Shown: one piece after another, positions 5,575 through 57,633 of the stretch
How positions within the stretch are numbered: position 1 is the stretch's first letter
Layout: each line of letters begins with the position of its first letter
Assembly (NCBI GenBank): GCA_052426225.1
Contig: JBNJNM010000010.1
Location: 1,116,001-1,180,000, forward strand
Reading direction: 5' to 3'
DNA: 64,000 nt
Origin: Zancudomyces culisetae HAW-14-8
Taxonomy: Eukaryota > Fungi > Kickxellomycota
Translations under genes and position numbers: made by a program
Notes under the pieces: generated by a model
Seen by the model: only the letters and a program-made list of their open reading frames with translations
Database searches by the model: none
What the model was told of the DNA's origin: nothing

Positions 5575-6940
5575 TTCCTTCAGACTTGATAACTGACTTA
5601 ACGATTTTGAAATTAATATCTATAAGACCAAGTATTGTTTCCTCTGTAATTGTTTTCCATTCCGATTCAATTCGCTCCCATAATTCGATCATCCCGGATG
5701 GTGGTTTACAGTATCTATTTAGGCGTCTTTTGATGATTGCCCATATAGTTTCATTGGGTTTAAGTCTGGAGATTGTGGCGGCCAGTCCAATGTATTATAT
5801 TCCTGGTTTTCAAGCCAGCTGGTAACTAACTTTGAGGTATGTTTAGGATCATTGTCATGTTGAAATATTATTGACTTGGGATCCAACTTGTAGTACTTTA
5901 TTGTATTGCTAAGCTCGTTTTTTAAAATGTTTAAATAACCTTTCTTGTTTAACATTCCTTCTATTCGGCACATGTAGCCAGTTCCAAATGCTGTGATGCA
6001 TCCCCAAATCATTAATGATCCTCCACCGTGTTTTACGGTCTGGTTAATATTGTGCGGCTGTAGACTCACACCATCACGAACCCAAGTCCATTCATTTCCA
6101 TCAGATCCAAATCGGTTGATTTTAGTTTTGTCGGACCAAATTACTCGCCTCCATTCATCAGTAGTCCAGTGGCGATGAGATTTTGCGAATCTCAACCTTT
6201 TTGCAATATTTTTAAGGCTCAGTTTCGGTTTGGATGCCTTCTTTTTTGCAACGGCTTTAAGATCATTAAAAGCCCTATATATTGTAGACTTACTAGCACT
6301 AACAATATTATCCATTTCTAACTTCTTTTGTATCGAAGTAGCAGATCGATACTCTCCAGATAATATCATCCTAGTACATATTCGCTTGCTTTGGGGTGAA
6401 AGCTTCGCTGGACAACCGCGTTTATTAGCCGGTAAATTTATATTCATAGCTGCTTTAATTCTGTATATTTTTGCTTTACTAACTCCATTTTCTATAATGA
6501 TTTGGTCAATGCTTCTGCCTTCAAGTAACGCGTTTTTAATATCCAGTTTACGTTGTTCAGATATCATTTTTTGTTAACGATTAATTTTATAATTATTAAA
6601 ATAATTATAATACTATTATATGTAATTGTTTTAATAATTTAAGATTGGAATTCATAATGTTATGATAGTTTAAATTTTGCTTTTGTAAAATTCCAAAAAT
6701 TGTCTCATTTTGTTATGGTTTTAAATTATATGAAACCTTTGTCTCCACAGGACAATGTTTCATATAATTTATCAATTATAATAATAACATTTACCGACCT
6801 CCACATTATTAATTTAAATGTTTTAGTTATGTTATAGTTATGTTTTAAATTAGTATATTTTTAACATTATCGTCCCATCATGAAAAGTATATAAGATATA
6901 CGATTATCATGATGGAACGATAAGTTTTACAACGAGTGTA
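5575..6940 (-). mobile_element. Tc1/mariner-superfamily DNA transposon (DD34E), defective
   Basis: Transposase 5719-6567 with HTH_Tnp_Tc3_2-like region, WSDKT, VKHGGGSLMIWGC, QHDNDPKH and WPPQSPDLNP. A 1-nt deletion at ~5752 shifts the frame just before the catalytic Glu; restoring it gives NP(I)ETIWAIIKRRL, 34 residues after the second Asp, continuing into ORF 5486-5692. Putative right end TA-CACTCG at 6940; no matching left TIR found. Confidence 0.9.
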
Positions 6941-49615: not shown

Positions 49616-51547
49616 ATGAGAGGGTTAAGAAAAATAGCTGCAAATATCCACGTACTTGCAATGCTCTATTCAGCATCTGCAAAATCTAGTTTTAGCACTA
49701 ACACTAATCTTTTGGGCGAATGTACCAGTATTTACGGCGAAGATTTATTCTTCCTGGACAGAGGGTGCTCAGTATGCCATTGTGATGATGAAGGAATATT
49801 GTGTAATAGGTATAGACTGTGTAACCCATCAGACATCAACGAAGACTCTCTATTAAGCTACGATATTGCAAAAAAGTGGGAAGCATATAACAGCTGTGTT
49901 GCCAAATATGACTATGATGTATTCAGTGGAGAAGATGGTTCTTCAAGCTGTATTTGCACGTTAAACGGCCCTAAATGTAGTACCAAAGATTTTAGTAACG
50001 CTCATGAACTGTTGGATCATGTTACTCACAGGGATTTCAACTCGAAAACAGTGTCTAGATTCGATAATGTGCACCTAACCGAAAATAATGTAGAAAGGCA
50101 TCTTATGTGCGTTGATACATTTGGAAGTGGTAGCTTTTACAGAAATGATGGATGTTCGGTATGTGTATGTACACTACAGGGCAGACTTTGTGACAACAAT
50201 ATATGCAAATCATCTTCTGATACAAAAGCAAAAACTTCTAAGGGAAGATGGCACGTAAAACGAGCAGGAAAGCAAAGACAGGAAGAAACTGATCCCGGAA
50301 CTGGCGGAGGAACTGATCCCGGAACTGGCGGAGGAACTGATCCCGGAACTGGCGGTGGAACTGATCCCGGAACTGGCGGTGGAACTGATCCCGGAACTGG
50401 CGGAGGAACTGATCCCGGAACTGGCGGTGGAACTGATCCCGGAACTGGCGGAGGAACTGATCCTGGAACTGGCGGAGGAACTGATCCCGGAACTGGCGGT
50501 GGAACTGATCCCGGAACTGGCGGAGGAACTGATCCTGGAACTGGCGGAGGAACTGATCCCGGAACTGGCGGTGGAACTGATCCCGGAACTGGCGGAGGAA
50601 CTGATCCTGGAACTGGCGGAGGAACTGATCCCGGAACTGGCGGTGGAACTGATCCCGGAACTGGCGGAGGAACTGATCCTGGAACTGGCGGAGGAACTGA
50701 TCCCGGAACTGGCGGAGGAACTGACCCTGGAACCGGCGGAGGAACTGACCCTGGAACCGGCGGAGGAACTGACCCTGGAACCGGCGAAAGCTTACCCGAT
50801 TGTGACACATCTAGTCCTGCATATAGCACACCTAGCTCTGTATATAGTCAGGACAAAACCCAAGTACCTTCACCCAGTTCTACTGAAACTTCAAGTGGCA
50901 AGATAATACTCACAAGCACTACTACAACGATAACTATAACCAACACAACAACCAACGCAAGCACCATAGTTATTTCAATAACTAATACGAGTCTTCAAAC
51001 AGCTGTGGTCACTGTTACAAGTACAACATTCTTCACTATAACCAACGGGGATACCAATACAGGCTCAAATACATCTACTGGAGTGAGCAATGAAGATGCA
51101 GGCACAGGGACAGCACCAACTGTGACCGAGAGTACATCTCCATCAGTATTACAGATTGACAGTATTGTCATCGATAAGCTTGGGTTAAATACGGTTAATA
51201 TTAAAACTATCAAGACTGATGATACAAGCAGCACTGACGGAGAAACAGATTCAGCAACCCCAAATAGTGTAGCTGACGTTAAGGTAAATAAGGAAGCTGG
51301 TACAAAGTCATCCGAGTCATCCGAGTCATCTAAATCATCGACAAAATCTAGTTTTCATACCATTCCGCTAGTCACTGAAATAGCAAATTCAAGTGTGGAT
51401 ACTACTTTAAACAATGCATCCTTGGATTCAGTTTCCTCAAAAACAAACGAAAAAACACCCAAGATTCCTAGTGTAACAGCACTTCCTGTATCAGACAAGG
51501 ATGAAACACAAGCAATTCCACATGTTACTAAAATAGCGACCAGATAA
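49616..51547 (+). CDS. Secreted modular protein: signal peptide, 3 pacifastin/VWC-like Cys modules, KR site, (TDPGTGGG)21, Ser/Thr-rich tail
   Basis: 643-aa ORF; basic-hydrophobic N-terminus ending ASA; C-x14-C-x2-C-x-C-x6-C-x4/5-C modules; all repeat variants synonymous in this frame. Confidence 0.9.
   Translation: MRGLRKIAANIHVLAMLYSASAKSSFSTNTNLLGECTSIYGEDLFFLDRGCSVCHCDDEGILCNRYRLCNPSDINEDSLLSYDIAKKWEAYNSCVAKYDYDVFSGEDGSSSCICTLNGPKCSTKDFSNAHELLDHVTHRDFNSKTVSRFDNVHLTENNVERHLMCVDTFGSGSFYRNDGCSVCVCTLQGRLCDNNICKSSSDTKAKTSKGRWHVKRAGKQRQEETDPGTGGGTDPGTGGGTDPGTGGGTDPGTGGGTDPGTGGGTDPGTGGGTDPGTGGGTDPGTGGGTDPGTGGGTDPGTGGGTDPGTGGGTDPGTGGGTDPGTGGGTDPGTGGGTDPGTGGGTDPGTGGGTDPGTGGGTDPGTGGGTDPGTGGGTDPGTGGGTDPGTGESLPDCDTSSPAYSTPSSVYSQDKTQVPSPSSTETSSGKIILTSTTTTITITNTTTNASTIVISITNTSLQTAVVTVTSTTFFTITNGDTNTGSNTSTGVSNEDAGTGTAPTVTESTSPSVLQIDSIVIDKLGLNTVNIKTIKTDDTSSTDGETDSATPNSVADVKVNKEAGTKSSESSESSKSSTKSSFHTIPLVTEIANSSVDTTLNNASLDSVSSKTNEKTPKIPSVTALPVSDKDETQAIPHVTKIATR
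50288..50785 (+). repeat. 24-bp coding minisatellite, 20 full units plus 1 partial
   Basis: Unit ACTGATCC(C/T)GGAACTGGCGG(A/T)GGA; first and last units start 480 bp apart. Confidence 0.98.
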
Positions 51548-53649
51548 AACACTCACATGAAAAAAGCATTTGAAAATTTTCTTTTGTGAAGCCACTTAGT
51601 TATAATGAGAATACAGTGGGTATATACTCTTTTTTTACTACTCATAATGCGTTTCCGCACACAGTTTCTATATCTTTTTTATGTTTTTGAGTCCGTTTAG
51701 TCATTTACTTACTTTAACAGGGCTAAAGTTATAAAAATACAAAAAACTTGAATGAAGCCCAATTCTGTGCTAACGTTGAGAATCCAGTGCAACAACAGCA
51801 AAGGTCGAATCATGTAGTTTGGATTATTTTATCTTCTACTAGTAACATAAAGCTGGGTAAATAGTACATGGTCATGTAGGAAAAATGAGGAGTAAGAGAA
51901 TGATATTATTCAAGCTATAATTGTACCAACTGTCGAGTATTTTGACAGAAGGAGAGATCGGGGTAGTCATAAAATAGAACAAAACTAACTTCAATTTTAA
52001 TATTCATGTTACATGAATTCAAGGCAAAAGTACATTTCCAGAGCTTTTTTTTTAATAAACCAAAAGAGCCAACAATGAGCGACCAGCAAGTAGTATTTGC
52101 AAAACATTACTGAGAGAACCACTTCTATATTCCCGCATATTTTGTTGTACTGGTCCAAGAATAAATGTCTTCAAACAGAAATTAAGTATACATAGGTTTA
52201 TAGTCCCATATGCTTTTTTGCAGCCCACAATTCACTATGTAAATCTAGAGCAAATAGCCCTACATCTTATTAGGCAAAACACAGCCATTAGTGGAACAAT
52301 AAATTAAAGACTATCGAGGCATCTCCATTTTAAAAAGAAGGCCACCGCTATAGATGAAAGGAAGAAGCTCACTCTGTGCATTTCTGTGTGTACAGTGATT
52401 TTACTGTATCCCATATCTACATCCTGAACTATACAACTTTCACATCATAATCTGTTATTTTTTTGCCTGTAATAATTCTTGAACCTCCATCATGCCTTTC
52501 AGCCTGCAAACTGTGAAAATCACACATTTGTTTTTCTTTTAAAGAAAAAAATATATATTAATAAAAACTTAAATCCTGAGATCTAATACTCGGCAACTTG
52601 ATTAAACGCAAACTTCAGCTGATATTGTTTAAGCTGTTCTCAAGAAAAAAATGTAAAAGAGGTTCAATTATCTTCAAATAAATTAAATAAAATCAGCCTT
52701 CTGGGTTTTTTGTAAAAATGGAATGCATTCTGAATTGTACTTACCAAGAATTATTTCTATTTTACCCAAAAGGCAGATCACAAGAAGGTGAATACACTAC
52801 TAGGGCTATAACAAATTTTCCCTAAAAAAATGAATAAACTTAGCACCACGCAATCCAAATTCAAGTGGATACATATCATTTGTACATGAGTAACTACTTG
52901 CTATCAAAAATGAAAAAGAAACATATATTCGAGCCATTGTGAATTATGAGTACTGTACCTAAATTTGAATGGAAAGGCAACACTAAAAATCAGGCTCAAA
53001 CTTAAGGAAGCGGGCTAAAGTGCCTGGAATGATTGAGATTTATCTAAGCCTTTTGCTCAAAATGGCAAAAGTGAATAGATGGAACGAATAAAAGCTGTAT
53101 TTATCCAGCGTGTAATCCTCCAAGTACATAACTTCAAGCATTTAAAAAAAATGATGTAGAAGCTGGGAAATTCTTACTAAATAGAATACGCTAATATAAA
53201 AATCAAGATATATTCCCTTGTAAAAATACACAAAGGTCAGTGATTTGGTCTATTGTGCTTTATGTTCGTGTGTACCAAAGCGACTATTTTAACAAGGGTC
53301 TAATATAACTTACACGCCAAGTTAATACTCATTCAATATACTCCTGGCGTTGTTTGATTAATTTCGGTGGTAATTAAGTGAAAAATAGTAGAAAAAAAGG
53401 GAATAAGAAAAACATACCCGGTACGTGAATGATACAGAAACTTGCTTTATTTGTGTGTTTCTTCAATTCTGAACTACTAAAGTCAGTTTTGAAAAGTAAA
53501 GTATCAAGTTTCGATTTTACTTCAGATATATATAATCCCACATTTTCTTTTAACTTTTAACATACAAATATACCCTTCAAAAACAACACAATAACCATTT
53601 AAATAATTGTATATAGCGTAAAGGTGTAAACATCATTAAGAAAAACACA

Positions 53650-54897
53650 ATGAGACTATTTAGAACTGTATTTTCAAACATCCACCTACTCGCATTGCTA
53701 TACACAGCAAATGCAAGCAACGCAGCAAACGCGGAAGCAGGACCTGCTGAGCAGATGATGAAGAGAGATGGAGGCTACAATGCAGGCTCACCACCAATGT
53801 ACCAAAATGGAGGCGGCAACGGCAACTACGTGTCCAATAACCCTGTATACGGTGACAATAAGGAAACTACAACAGTTACCACAACTGCAACCAGCTTCAG
53901 CACCGAGACTTGCACCGTAACAACCACTGATGTGCAAACCACCACATCAACATGCACCTCCACTGTCACTGATGTTCAAACATCCGTTTCAACAAGCATC
54001 AGTACTGAAACTTGCACTGTGACCACAACTGACACACAAACAAGCACCACAACTTGTACCTCAACTGTCACTGATTTCCAAACATCCACTGTGACATCAG
54101 TAGAGACTTGCACCGTGACAACAACTGATATGCAAACCACCACATCAACATGCACCCAAACTGTTACTGACGTTCAAACTTCATTCGGAACTGTTACTAG
54201 CACAACAACATCAGTCTGCACCGTCACCGAGACTGAGATCCAAACTGCATTCGGAACAGAGACACTTGTAGTTACCCAAACAGCCATACAAACAGAAACA
54301 ATTGCAAAGACATGCACCGTAACTGAGAGCACAACAGTAACCGAAAAAACTTGCGAGTACAAGACACACGGTGGTTACCAAGCCCAAAATCAGTACAATG
54401 TACAAGATGGATACAAAGCATACAATGGATACCAATCACACGAATCAAGCGAATACACAACTACAGACTCCGAGTCTGAGTCTGACTCCGAGTCTGACAC
54501 TGAATCTGATACTGACATTGAATCTGACACTGACTCCGATGCCGGATCAGACACTGGCTCTGACTCTGATGCAGTCACCAACGGTATTGACGGTGCCAGC
54601 ATTGCAGCTGTCGATCCCACAAACAGTACCAGCACACTCAGCCTTAACACAGTTTCACTTGGAAGCGTCTCTGTAAACACACTAAAGGTAAAATCCAGCA
54701 GCAGCACCAGCAGCGCAGTCACATCTGTTTCTGATGTAACCAATGCCGCCGTACCAGCAAAGGAAAGCAGCAAATCATCAGCCAATGACAAGGACAGTTC
54801 AGTTCCCCGTGTTACAGCACTCAGTGATGCTTCAAAGGCCGCATCAAAGACTAGCAGCTTCCACAAAGTCCCAAGAGTCACAGCAATCTTCGGATAA
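53650..54897 (+). CDS. Secreted Thr/Cys-repeat protein (adhesin/cell-surface-like), paralog of 49616-51547
   Basis: 415 aa; signal MRLFRTVFSNIHLLALLYTANA; MMKR dibasic site; TCT repeats; Tyr hexad; Asp/Ser tract; C-terminal SSFHKVPRVTAIFG. Confidence 0.9.
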   Translation: MRLFRTVFSNIHLLALLYTANASNAANAEAGPAEQMMKRDGGYNAGSPPMYQNGGGNGNYVSNNPVYGDNKETTTVTTTATSFSTETCTVTTTDVQTTTSTCTSTVTDVQTSVSTSISTETCTVTTTDTQTSTTTCTSTVTDFQTSTVTSVETCTVTTTDMQTTTSTCTQTVTDVQTSFGTVTSTTTSVCTVTETEIQTAFGTETLVVTQTAIQTETIAKTCTVTESTTVTEKTCEYKTHGGYQAQNQYNVQDGYKAYNGYQSHESSEYTTTDSESESDSESDTESDTDIESDTDSDAGSDTGSDSDAVTNGIDGASIAAVDPTNSTSTLSLNTVSLGSVSVNTLKVKSSSSTSSAVTSVSDVTNAAVPAKESSKSSANDKDSSVPRVTALSDASKAASKTSSFHKVPRVTAIFG

Positions 54898-56990
54898 ATT
54901 CATCAATAAGAAAAATCAAACAAGTCAAGAGTAAAAACAAAAAAACGGCTGTATGGTGTATAGTGTAAATCATATGTTGCAAATTGTAATACTCGAAACA
55001 TTCCTAAAGACTCCTTCACTGAAATAATGTTGATAAATTTTCCCCTATCTTTTTATATTGATGAATTTTTAAAATAAACAACTTTCGAATCATTTTTGGG
55101 ATTTTTAAAGTAAACAGTCTTATGAAAACAAGAGTGACTTTCAAAAACTGTATCGTTGTGTTAAATGCACTCTGATCGTATCAAAACCATAGTAGCAAGA
55201 TTTTGGTTGAAAACCCCGTTAGTGATCCACATCATTGTACTTTGCTTTTACCTCTAAGAAAATTGTTTTTTTGGAGTATTTAAATAAATTTATTCGCCCT
55301 AATCTTGAAGTTCATAGATAGAATTAAATTTTTCTAGACAGTAGAAATTGATAGGAATTGAGAAGAGTAAACAAGTGGATGTGTCTATAAGCACGATATT
55401 GTAGTTTTACAGAAATATAGTCGATAAATTAAAGTGCATTGAAGCAGATTAATGCAGATTCGGATTAATACAATAAAGCACGCTCATTAGCGCCGAAACT
55501 AAATTAGCGATCCCAAATAATATCTGATAGGCTTCTGACATACTTTATAATTTGTGTTGGGTATAAAAAAAGATCTTTTTCAGTTGCTAAGGTTCCAGCT
55601 TTTGTGCTTGAAACTTTATAATTGACTCTATCACTTCTTTCGGATTGTAATCAAATATACCATGGTAAAATGATAGAGAATGTACAAGATAACAATTGTT
55701 GGTAGTCTAAAATAACACATTGTGTTACTTTGTTACAACCAGCTTACTACAAAAGCAGTAAAGTCAAATAATTACCTGGTGGTAGCAAAAGAGATAGTGT
55801 GGTAAAATCGTCGCATACCACCTACAGCATACATGGTTAAACACTGTTCTTATTTAAGACCGTGACCTTGTAAACAGCAAAAAATGATGTAAATAGACAC
55901 TAGGGTTTGGTGAGTCGGGAAAACTAGAATTTAAGAAAGGGAAAATGTTGAGCCACCAAATTGAGAATAAAGAGAATTATGTTTAGGAAAAATCAAAAGT
56001 TTACTCAACGAACAATGGGTGTTTATATCTGAATACTCTTGAAAAAAGTCAAAAAATTCATCTGTGAAATGTTAAAGCTGTTTTGATTGTTTAAGCGTGG
56101 CAATAGTTTAATAAACAGAGTTCATATATTCATTACAATCCTGCGAACTCTGCAAAGCTAGAACATTTCCCTGTTCGTGAATTTAGTGATCCAGGTATAA
56201 AAAAAAGATATGATGAAACATCAACAAATCAATACTAAAATTCGGGAAAATCATTGGGCGGGTATTATATTCGAGTATTAAATCCCACAGGTTGTAACAA
56301 AATTCCGGATCACACACAACTACATTTTGGTTACCGCAATTCTCATGCCCTCTCCCCGCCCCCTCCCCTCCCAGCCGTGTGGAACGACAAATACGTTTAA
56401 GAGTATTTTCGGTCGTCAGGTCAATACACTCTTGTTGATTATCATCAATATCCGCTGTCTTTTTTAATCGAATTTGTGTATTATCTATGTATTTGTACTT
56501 ATGAACTACCCACGCACTTGTATTCATTTGCGTACTAATTATGGGTTTGTGTTTGTGTTTGTGTTTGTGCTACTATTCTTATATTTGTATTCTTGTACTA
56601 CTTGTGAATTTGTGCTTGTGCCATTACAGCCTCGCTTGAAGACAACTTTGAAAATAAAATAAAACAATTTATTATTTAGGCTAATGTGTGTATACAAATA
56701 GATGGTGGGTAAATCAAAGCAAACGCACGAGAAAGTGTGTATACAACCTCGATGGCCATCAACCAAAAAACAACTAATCCAAACTTTGAACACAAAGTAT
56801 TTTATACCCATAAATATATATTTAAATACCCACTGTAGTATCCCAATTATTAGATTTCATATACAAACTTATCTTTTCTACTTTGCGTGTAGATATATTG
56901 GAATTGATTTTACTTTTGTTTTGCTAATACCCATACTTGCAAGGCCCATACAGGCAAATTGTGGAGACATTACCATATATTTTAACAACA

Positions 56991-57633
56991 ATGACAGTAT
57001 TAAAACAGTCAGTCACAAACGTAACTATGGCTGTATTGCTGTATGCCAGCTATGCACTCGGTACACAAAGTTTGGGTAGAGCTAGCGGTGAACATGATTT
57101 TGGGGTGGTGGTACAAAAGCACAACGTCCGTGATGTGGGGAATAGTGATTACAGTCCGCAATTACTGTCACAACAAGAGCCGGTACCATCACAGTTGCAA
57201 AATAACATCAATATTGGAGGTGAGAAATATACCTTATTACCAAATACGCATAAAATCAAATTAATTACAAGTTACTATATATTGTAATAAAAAATAAAAA
57301 TATTTCATCATAGCGGTGAAGAGTGAACTAAAGAAGAAAAATTCAGTTTTTGGATACATAATAGATCCAACAAGTACTGATGAAGTAACCACTGAGATAA
57401 TACCTGACGACGGATCAACCTTTGATCCAACAATCATTGACAACGTCGATTTTCATGAAGCATCTGACAATGCTGTGTTGCATTCAATTTCTGATAGTCC
57501 GCTCTCTTCTATATTTTTAAATGATGATGGAGACAAAGCAACGGATCGCAAAACAGATGAAAATCGCTCAAAATCAACAACTACTGCCCAACTTGACGAT
57601 TCTATCGAGTTGGTTACCTCTATCACACAATAA
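56991..57633 (+). CDS. Small secreted acidic protein (182 aa), probable third family member; exons 56991-57219 and 57314-57633
   Basis: Signal-like MTVLKQSVTNVTMAVLLYASYA; GTGAGA..CATAG 94-nt intron joins two ORF-track fragments in frame; ends SIELVTSITQ*. Confidence 0.65.

Follow-up and report, generated by a model that had tools for sequence, protein, structure and literature searches.

Among the proteins of the fungal cell wall are Ser/Thr-rich, adhesin-like glycoproteins of the ALS, FLO, EPA and HYR/IFF types, the genes for which lie in tandem or subtelomeric clusters. The PIR cell-wall proteins have short internal repeats which link the protein to glucan. Conotoxins fall into superfamilies with a conserved signal and pro-region and a hypervariable mature part. 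“Ancestral-type” pacifastin-like domains have been reported in fungi, in multidomain extracellular proteins (2026, PMC13388995). The locus considered here resembles each of these systems in part. It lies in a stretch of 64,000 nucleotides (referred to as the window) of Zancudomyces culisetae HAW-14-8 [assembly GCA_052426225.1, contig JBNJNM010000010.1 (C10), positions 1,116,001 to 1,180,000 of the forward strand], in which three neighbouring genes for secreted proteins (genes 1, 2 and 3) occupy positions 49,616 to 57,633.

A preliminary description of this locus, made from the sequence, had seen in the three genes one family with shared signal peptides, shared tails and interchangeable, unrelated middles, and had supposed that the organism might be an insect-gut fungus of the Harpellales. 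The organism is indeed such a fungus, Z. culisetae; OMH84491.1, from that species, has 99% identity to gene 1. The coordinates were correct throughout, as were the common orientation of the three genes (+ strand), the spacer lengths of 2102 and 2093 bp and the peptides cited. However, the proposed three-way cassette family reduces to one well-supported pair (genes 1 and 2) and looser relatives. The three genes are neighbours as described, but they are not the whole group: a fourth gene lies 13.8 kb farther downstream, and contig C13 carries a fifth.

The locus is probably a young, fast-evolving cluster for secreted, non-anchored, Ser/Thr-rich, mucin-like glycoproteins, restricted to Z. culisetae as far as databases reach. 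It has changed by domain loss, by changes in repeat number and by copying or conversion of a 5′ module. Evolution of this kind is ordinary for surface proteins of fungi; in addition, the locus has one orphan tail motif. In common with the ALS, FLO, EPA and HYR/IFF types, there is a signal peptide, an N-terminal globular head and a long Thr-rich tandem-repeat stalk, together with fast change in repeat number, recombination between paralogues and long upstream regions. In contrast to those types, genes 1–4 encode no glycosylphosphatidylinositol (GPI) signal, although two distant paralogues have one; the head is pacifastin-like, rather than PA14 or Ig-like; and the orphan [IV]PxVT tail motif is present.

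Genes 1 and 2 Have Related Signals and Tails

Gene 1 (49616–51547, + strand) is an uninterrupted open reading frame (ORF) of 643 amino acids (aa), comprising, in order, a signal peptide, three pacifastin-like Cys modules, a Lys-Arg (KR) site, the octapeptide TDPGTGGG repeated 21 times, a Thr-rich stalk and the tail. The same protein is on record at NCBI as OMH84491.1 (AX774_g1980, hypothetical protein, Z. culisetae), the 99% identity to which applies outside the octapeptide array; in the NCBI entry the array is collapsed to a few units. The array itself (50287–50786, + strand), the presence of which had been noted before, was recovered by Tandem Repeats Finder (TRF) with a period of 24 bp, 20.8 copies and 95% matches. 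Gene 2 (53650–54897, + strand) is also an uninterrupted ORF, of 415 aa, the order being signal peptide, a short pro-region ending in KR (residues 38–39), a Tyr/Gly/Asn-rich stretch, Thr/Cys repeats, a Tyr block, an Asp/Ser tract and the tail. The Thr/Cys repeats are units of 34 aa (102-bp period, 2.9 copies by TRF). A twin of gene 2 on contig C6 is 100% identical; among the contigs on record, none encoding gene 2 was found.

The signal peptide of gene 1 (49616–49681, + strand; MRGLRKIAANIHVLAMLYSASA) is of the type MR..[KR]...NIH.LA..Y, and matches that of gene 2 at the N-termini over 18 aa (BLASTP, E=3e-5). The genome searched for further members has 25 contigs and 27.09 Mb in total; for Z. 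culisetae, a PacBio-HiFi assembly of 27.18 Mb, in 26 contigs and with 35.56% GC, has been published (PMC12611240). In a profile search of the whole genome, the gene 1/2 type of signal was found in gene 1, gene 2 and the gene on C13 only.

The tails of the two genes are the second point of similarity. The gene 1 tail (51158–51547, + strand) has the block DKLGLNTVNIK and three copies of the motif [IV]PxVTx[IL], at 51362, 51464 and 51515; the gene 2 tail (54613–54897, + strand) has the block TLSLNTVSLGSVSVNTLK and two copies of VPRVTA[LI], at 54802 and 54868. When aligned, the tails are 35% identical. Their Smith-Waterman score of 90 compares with 57.7 +/- 8.2 for composition-preserving shuffles and was reached by one shuffle in 1000, or by eight in 1000 when the shuffling was confined to 15-residue windows. 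The three copies of [IV]-P-x-V-T in gene 1 and the two in gene 2 were reached by none and by one, respectively, of 20000 shuffles of the whole protein. When the motif was back-translated and two copies were required within 36–66 nt, the paired motif was found across the 27 Mb in genes 1 and 2 and their C6 twins only, and the reversed control pattern gave one match. The residue x of the motif varies (L, S, H, R, R). A genome-wide search with a profile of both tails found only genes 1 and 2 at E<=10; a search of the ESM Atlas with the gene 1 tail gave no usable match, and word searches of the protein collection with the gene 1 head and the gene 2 tail gave none.

Since signals, tails and the paired motif are all related, genes 1 and 2 form a genuine pair, in signal and tail alike. 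The signals of gene 1, gene 2 and the C13 gene share common descent, as do the tails of genes 1 and 2. Thus, the claims of related signals and of tails that stand out from shuffled controls are upheld for this pair, and lineage specificity is upheld too: both the signal type and the tail type are confined to Z. culisetae as far as databases reach.

As in the PIR proteins, a short conserved motif is present two or three times in an otherwise low-complexity secreted protein without a GPI anchor. The motif differs, being [IV]-P-x-V-T-x-[IL] instead of Q-[IV]-x-D-G-Q-[IV]-Q; the latter is absent from the translations, and no Pfam PIR match was found in them.

The Head of Gene 1 and Its Paralogues

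The three Cys modules of gene 1 (49715–50209, + strand) are of a divergent pacifastin-like kind, with the consensus CVxxxGxxxFxxxDGCSxCxCTxxGxxCxxxxC from 31 aligned modules. The pattern C1..C2-x-x-C3-x-C4-x3-G-x2-3-C5-x4-5-C6 fits modules 1 and 3 of gene 1 and of all paralogues, and the middle module of every triple, in gene 1 and paralogues alike, lacks Cys2 and Cys6 together. About ten paralogues of the head (residues 5–203 of gene 1) are present in the genome: two on C6, one on C13, one on C15 and several on C11. Thr-rich stalks of 700–1700 aa are present in both C6 paralogues, in those on C13 and C15 and in one of those on C11. Two others, both on C11, are triple-module proteins with GPI-like hydrophobic tails: L019:982-2136 (- strand, 384 aa) and L049:1312-2577 (+ strand, 421 aa). 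The former has the sequence SVPTVTDSA just ahead of its hydrophobic tail, and its tail region resembles that of gene 2 (score reached by 5 of 1000 shuffles).

One paralogue, L048, passes the Pfam model PF05375 (Pacifastin_I) with 50.9 bits (E=1.3e-13; cut-off 27.9), and residues 31–129 of gene 1 match it at E=2.3e-5. L048:822-1946 (C11:3091121-3092245) encodes a secreted protein of 374 aa with five pacifastin-type modules, several of which have the canonical Cys5-Thr-Leu-Met reactive-site pattern. It is the genome's best candidate, by its sequence, for an active chymotrypsin-type inhibitor.

The search with the head profile was an exhaustive hidden Markov model search of 1.84 billion proteins, of which 12 matched at E<=0.001. 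The five best are from Z. culisetae and the next is from Smittium simulii. Two S. simulii proteins, PVU89611.1 and PVU89088.1, bear the UniRef name “Pacifastin domain-containing protein”. With these proteins, and with the fungal ancestral-type domains (PMC13388995), the gene 1 head shares the six-Cys module, an extended N-terminal part and the occurrence in multidomain extracellular proteins. It differs in that its modules are too divergent for Pfam, the middle module is without one disulfide pair and the reactive site is not kept; moreover, the triple-module head has close relatives within Z. culisetae only. Von Willebrand factor type C models scored under their cut-offs on gene 1 (PF00093, 18.5 bits against 27; PF23333, 12.7 bits against 27.6), and similar sub-threshold matches were obtained for the paralogues. 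Of the ten best matches of the module profile in PDB, nine were pacifastin inhibitors, but at E ~1.

The gene on C13 encodes 1220 aa and starts with MRIFKSLVANIHLLAAVYSAE. The signal is followed by a pro-region ending in KR and by three Cys modules, with 44% identity to the gene 1 modules. Another KR and a linker rich in Tyr, Gly and Asn then lead to TxT repeats of about 900 residues, which match gene 2 too. By its layout, this gene seems to be the complete form, from which gene 1 would have arisen with the head kept and a new Gly/Pro array, and gene 2 by loss of the head. Gene 2, gene 4, the C13 gene and the paralogues on C6 and C15 all have a Tyr/Gly/Asn stretch ahead of the Thr-rich stalk. 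The middles had been called unrelated, but a Thr/Ile/Val-rich stalk is common to all of them, which makes them partly alike in kind, and the Cys modules of gene 1 are of a known, pacifastin-like kind.

Gene 3, Gene 4 and a Common 5′ Module

With a signal profile, genes 1, 2, 3 and 4 and the C13 gene were found; all five loci have a twin on C6. A weak match on C21 was rejected, being internal to a trypsin-mucin protein.

Gene 3 (+ strand) is read here as two putative exons. The first (56991–57219) would encode the signal MTVLKQSVTNVTMAVLLYASYA and 54 more residues; a putative intron of 94 nt (57220–57313; GTGAGA...ATAG, phase 1) would follow; and the second exon (57314–57633) would add 106 codons, acidic and Asp/Ser/Thr-rich, ending in SIELVTSITQ. 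The putative spliced product has 182 aa (the exons were searched separately). If unspliced, the ORF ends at the stop at 57285–57287, with a product of 98 aa. The codon-usage score of exon 2, 0.32 per codon, is coding-like, though antisense decoy ORFs score nearly as high. The only relative of exon 2 in the genome is its C6 twin, and a word search of the protein collection found none.

It is for gene 3 that the three-way family fails. The score of exon 2 against the tails of gene 1 and gene 2 is at chance, being reached by 355 and 467 of 1000 shuffles, and hhalign against the gene 1/2 tail profile gave P=0.28; the short tail matches that had been listed for gene 3 exist and are colinear, but carry no statistical weight. 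The signal of gene 3 is in the same register as those of gene 1, gene 2 and the C13 gene at N10, LLY16–18 and A22. Region-preserving shuffles gave P ~0.003, and none of 127 signal-like decoy N-termini reached the score; a profile of gene 1, gene 2 and the C13 gene alone did not retrieve gene 3 from the genome. Homology of the gene 3 signal to the gene 1/2 type is thus likely but weak.

A much stronger connection is that to gene 4, a single ORF of 230 aa beyond the window (C10:1186806-1187498, equivalent to ~70806–71498). A module of 928 bp (56280–57207, + strand) consists of the promoter (711 bp upstream of the ATG) and the first ~72 codons of gene 3. It recurs with 99% identity 13.8 kb downstream, at C10:1186095-1187010, and there it heads gene 4. 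The identity ends abruptly, 12 bp before the putative donor site of gene 3. The sharing of this 5′ module by genes 3 and 4 is clear. From the 99% identity and the abrupt break, gene 3 appears to be a recent product of partial duplication or conversion, in which the 5′ module of gene 4 stands before an orphan acidic exon. Here, in one place, the cassette behaviour that had been proposed for all three genes is seen: one promoter-plus-signal module before two different 3′ parts. This is the likeness to conotoxins, a conserved 5′ module reused on different downstream coding sequence. The difference is that only one event is seen here, which includes the promoter and has the appearance of a recent partial duplication or conversion, not of an established system of diversification.

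The gene 4 product comprises the signal, a Tyr/Gln/Gly-rich stretch, a Thr-rich stalk, three copies of GTNTS and the block EKLEINSISVNKVNVGDK. This tail block is weakly similar to the LGLNTV block of genes 1 and 2 (hhalign P=0.018; score against gene 1 reached by 18 of 1000 shuffles), and gene 4 is without the [IV]PxVT motif. Between genes 3 and 4 lie housekeeping genes: a PIG-X/PBN1 gene and an ORF that looks Cdc6/Orc1-like, the latter by eye only. A Ty3/gypsy gag-like ORF starts ~1.2 kb past the stop of gene 4 (C10:1188700-1190000).

Secretion and Anchoring

From their sequences, the products of genes 1–3 look secreted and anchor-less. The N-termini have a hydrophobic core (Kyte-Doolittle 1.8–1.9) and sites of the A-x-A type, and Ser and Thr together make up 28–38% of the residues. 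As had been described, there is no transmembrane or GPI-type hydrophobic tail: in genes 1–4 the highest 12-residue Kyte-Doolittle mean in the last 30 aa is <=0.63, and no transmembrane-type stretch was found, the highest 19-residue mean being <=1.34. No plausible 3′ exon that could carry a GPI signal was seen downstream. The KR sites lie at domain boundaries: residues 38–39 of gene 2, residues 215–216 of gene 1 and the corresponding residues of the C13 gene and of further paralogues.

Spacers, Duplicated Block and Neighbouring Repeats

The near-equal length of the two spacers had been remarked on. Spacer 1 (51548–53649; 2102 bp) is non-coding; spacer 2 (54898–56990; 2093 bp) includes, as its last 711 bp, part of the 928-bp module. 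A blastn comparison of the spacers and their flanks (word size 7) found no DNA similarity between them, and thus the near-equal length looks coincidental. No ORF was found in the spacers, and no tRNA or Rfam match in 46–64 kb. The upstream regions of gene 1, gene 2, gene 3 and the C13 gene have no common word above shuffled controls.

The window from ~5700 to beyond 64000 (C10:1121700-1187500) is present again, inverted, at C6:1838300-1904600, over at least ~65 kb and with 99.2–99.7% identity. Both copies lie inside large contigs, and MCM6, normally single-copy, is 100% identical between them. Either an inverted segmental duplication took place very recently, or the doubling is an artefact of assembly or haplotype. 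The two copies differ in repeat number in genes 1 and 4: the octapeptide has 21 units on C10 and 15 on C6, the gene 1 ORF being 648 aa and 600 aa, respectively, in this comparison.

At 5719–6567 (- strand) of the window there is an ORF of 282 aa, part of a repeat with ~140 genomic copies, many of which carry stop codons; it is thus a transposable-element protein. A Gly-rich frame, ~38% identical to the Gly/Pro array of gene 1, occurs within 0.5–2 kb of many contig ends (for example, near contig starts, C6:733-1227, C7:1069-1533, C8:750-1175, C11:511-1641, C12:1105-1572, C15:1099-1545 and C23:919-1329), and is probably a subtelomeric repeat.

Proposed Origin and Fate of the Products

The cluster probably originated from the larger family in the same genome, in which a member comprises a signal, three pacifastin-like modules and a dibasic site, then a linker rich in Tyr, Gly and Asn and, in most cases, a long stalk rich in Thr, with two more distant members ending in GPI-like tails. 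The C13 gene would have kept this full architecture together with a signal of the gene 1/2 type. Gene 1 would have retained the head and acquired the new Gly/Pro array, gene 2 would have lost the head, and in both a tail with two to three copies of [IV]-P-x-V-T-x-[IL] would have replaced the GPI signal. Gene 4 would be a short, headless member, and gene 3 a recent chimera, in which the promoter and first ~72 codons of gene 4 are joined, via the putative 94-nt intron, to the orphan acidic exon.

The products would enter the endoplasmic reticulum by means of the signal peptide and be cleaved by a Kex2-type protease at KR, after the pro-region in gene 2 and between head and stalk in gene 1 and the C13 gene. 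They would then be O-glycosylated and released into the wall or matrix, and may contribute to the coat on the thallus surface in the gut of the larva. There, the pacifastin-like head may act on serine proteases of the host, by binding or blocking them. The role of the products might be in coating, adhesion or shielding against proteases.

Several points weigh against this account. The species restriction was established for annotated proteins only. Signal cleavage after A-x-A, Kex2 processing and glycosylation are predictions from sequence rules. The gene 1 modules reach no Pfam threshold, with no match to PF05375 at E<=1; as it is L048 that has the match, the pacifastin link of gene 1 is transitive only. 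The Cys5–Cys6 loops of gene 1, C-NRYRL-C and C-DNNI-C, are without the Cys5-Thr-P1 reactive-site pattern, and this loss makes inhibitor activity doubtful. The AlphaFold2 model of the gene 1 head, built with eight paralogues, is poor (predicted local distance difference test score, pLDDT, of 55). The splice and the gene model of gene 3 are putative, and the relation of the gene 3/4 signal to that of genes 1 and 2 is a weak one.

Alternative Explanations

The shared ends could instead be functional handles, by which three different cargos co-assemble into an extracellular structure, such as holdfast glue or the appendage of the trichospore, with the tail motif serving for cross-linking or docking. 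Harpellales make a holdfast, the genes are clustered and of the secreted, anchor-less type, the tail motif is repeated and unique to genes 1 and 2, and the Tyr-rich and Asp/Ser-rich blocks of gene 2 fit adhesive chemistry. However, the tail is common to two of the genes only, there is no promoter motif in common, and signal peptides are removed before any assembly and therefore cannot serve as handles; moreover, common descent accounts for the shared ends without any function. Co-assembly and a role in holdfast or appendage are conjecture, and this explanation is considered unlikely.

It is likewise improbable that the locus is first of all a protease shield, in which gene 1 and its paralogues display inhibitor modules on a mucin stalk against the trypsins and chymotrypsins of the larval gut, with genes 2–4 as mucin filler or decoy substrates. 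The gene 1 modules are pacifastin-like but have no Thr at P2, have altered Cys5–Cys6 loops and lack a Pfam match; it is L048 that keeps the canonical Cys5-Thr-Leu reactive-site pattern. The habitat is a protease-rich gut, and Val-Pro-Arg, present in the gene 2 motif (VPR/VT, a trypsin-type site), is the classic P3–P1 sequence for trypsin-like enzymes, but residue x of the tail motif, which is Arg in gene 2, is a variable one.

A related suggestion concerns the tail alone. The [IV]-P-x-V-T-x-[IL] tail might be a new element for non-GPI retention, for cross-linking or for processing by host proteases in surface or holdfast proteins of the Harpellales, the cluster diversifying, as in genes 3 and 4, by moving a promoter-plus-signal module onto new coding sequence; this is quite unlikely.

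That there is no real family, only generic signal features, a low-complexity Ser/Thr composition and coincidental spacing, is very improbable. In its favour, signals are always somewhat alike, the spacers are unrelated and the tail similarity of gene 3 is at chance. Against it, the signals of genes 1 and 2 do match, their tail alignment is equalled by only one shuffle in 1000, the paired motif is confined to them and their C6 twins and the 928-bp identity of genes 3 and 4 is beyond doubt. The pair of genes 1 and 2 and that of genes 3 and 4 thus already refute this reading, which stands only for the tail link of gene 3.

Significance

A young, fast-evolving cluster of secreted mucin-like glycoproteins, as favoured here, is of interest in two respects. 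The module of genes 3 and 4 shows clearly how a new secreted gene can be formed from a copied promoter and signal exon. To our knowledge, nothing is known of the molecular basis of the attachment and survival of Harpellales in the insect gut, and a literature search found no paper on the molecular make-up of the holdfast. Species-restricted, anchor-less secreted glycoproteins, one of them with a pacifastin-like head, are concrete candidates for a part in attachment to, and survival in, the gut.

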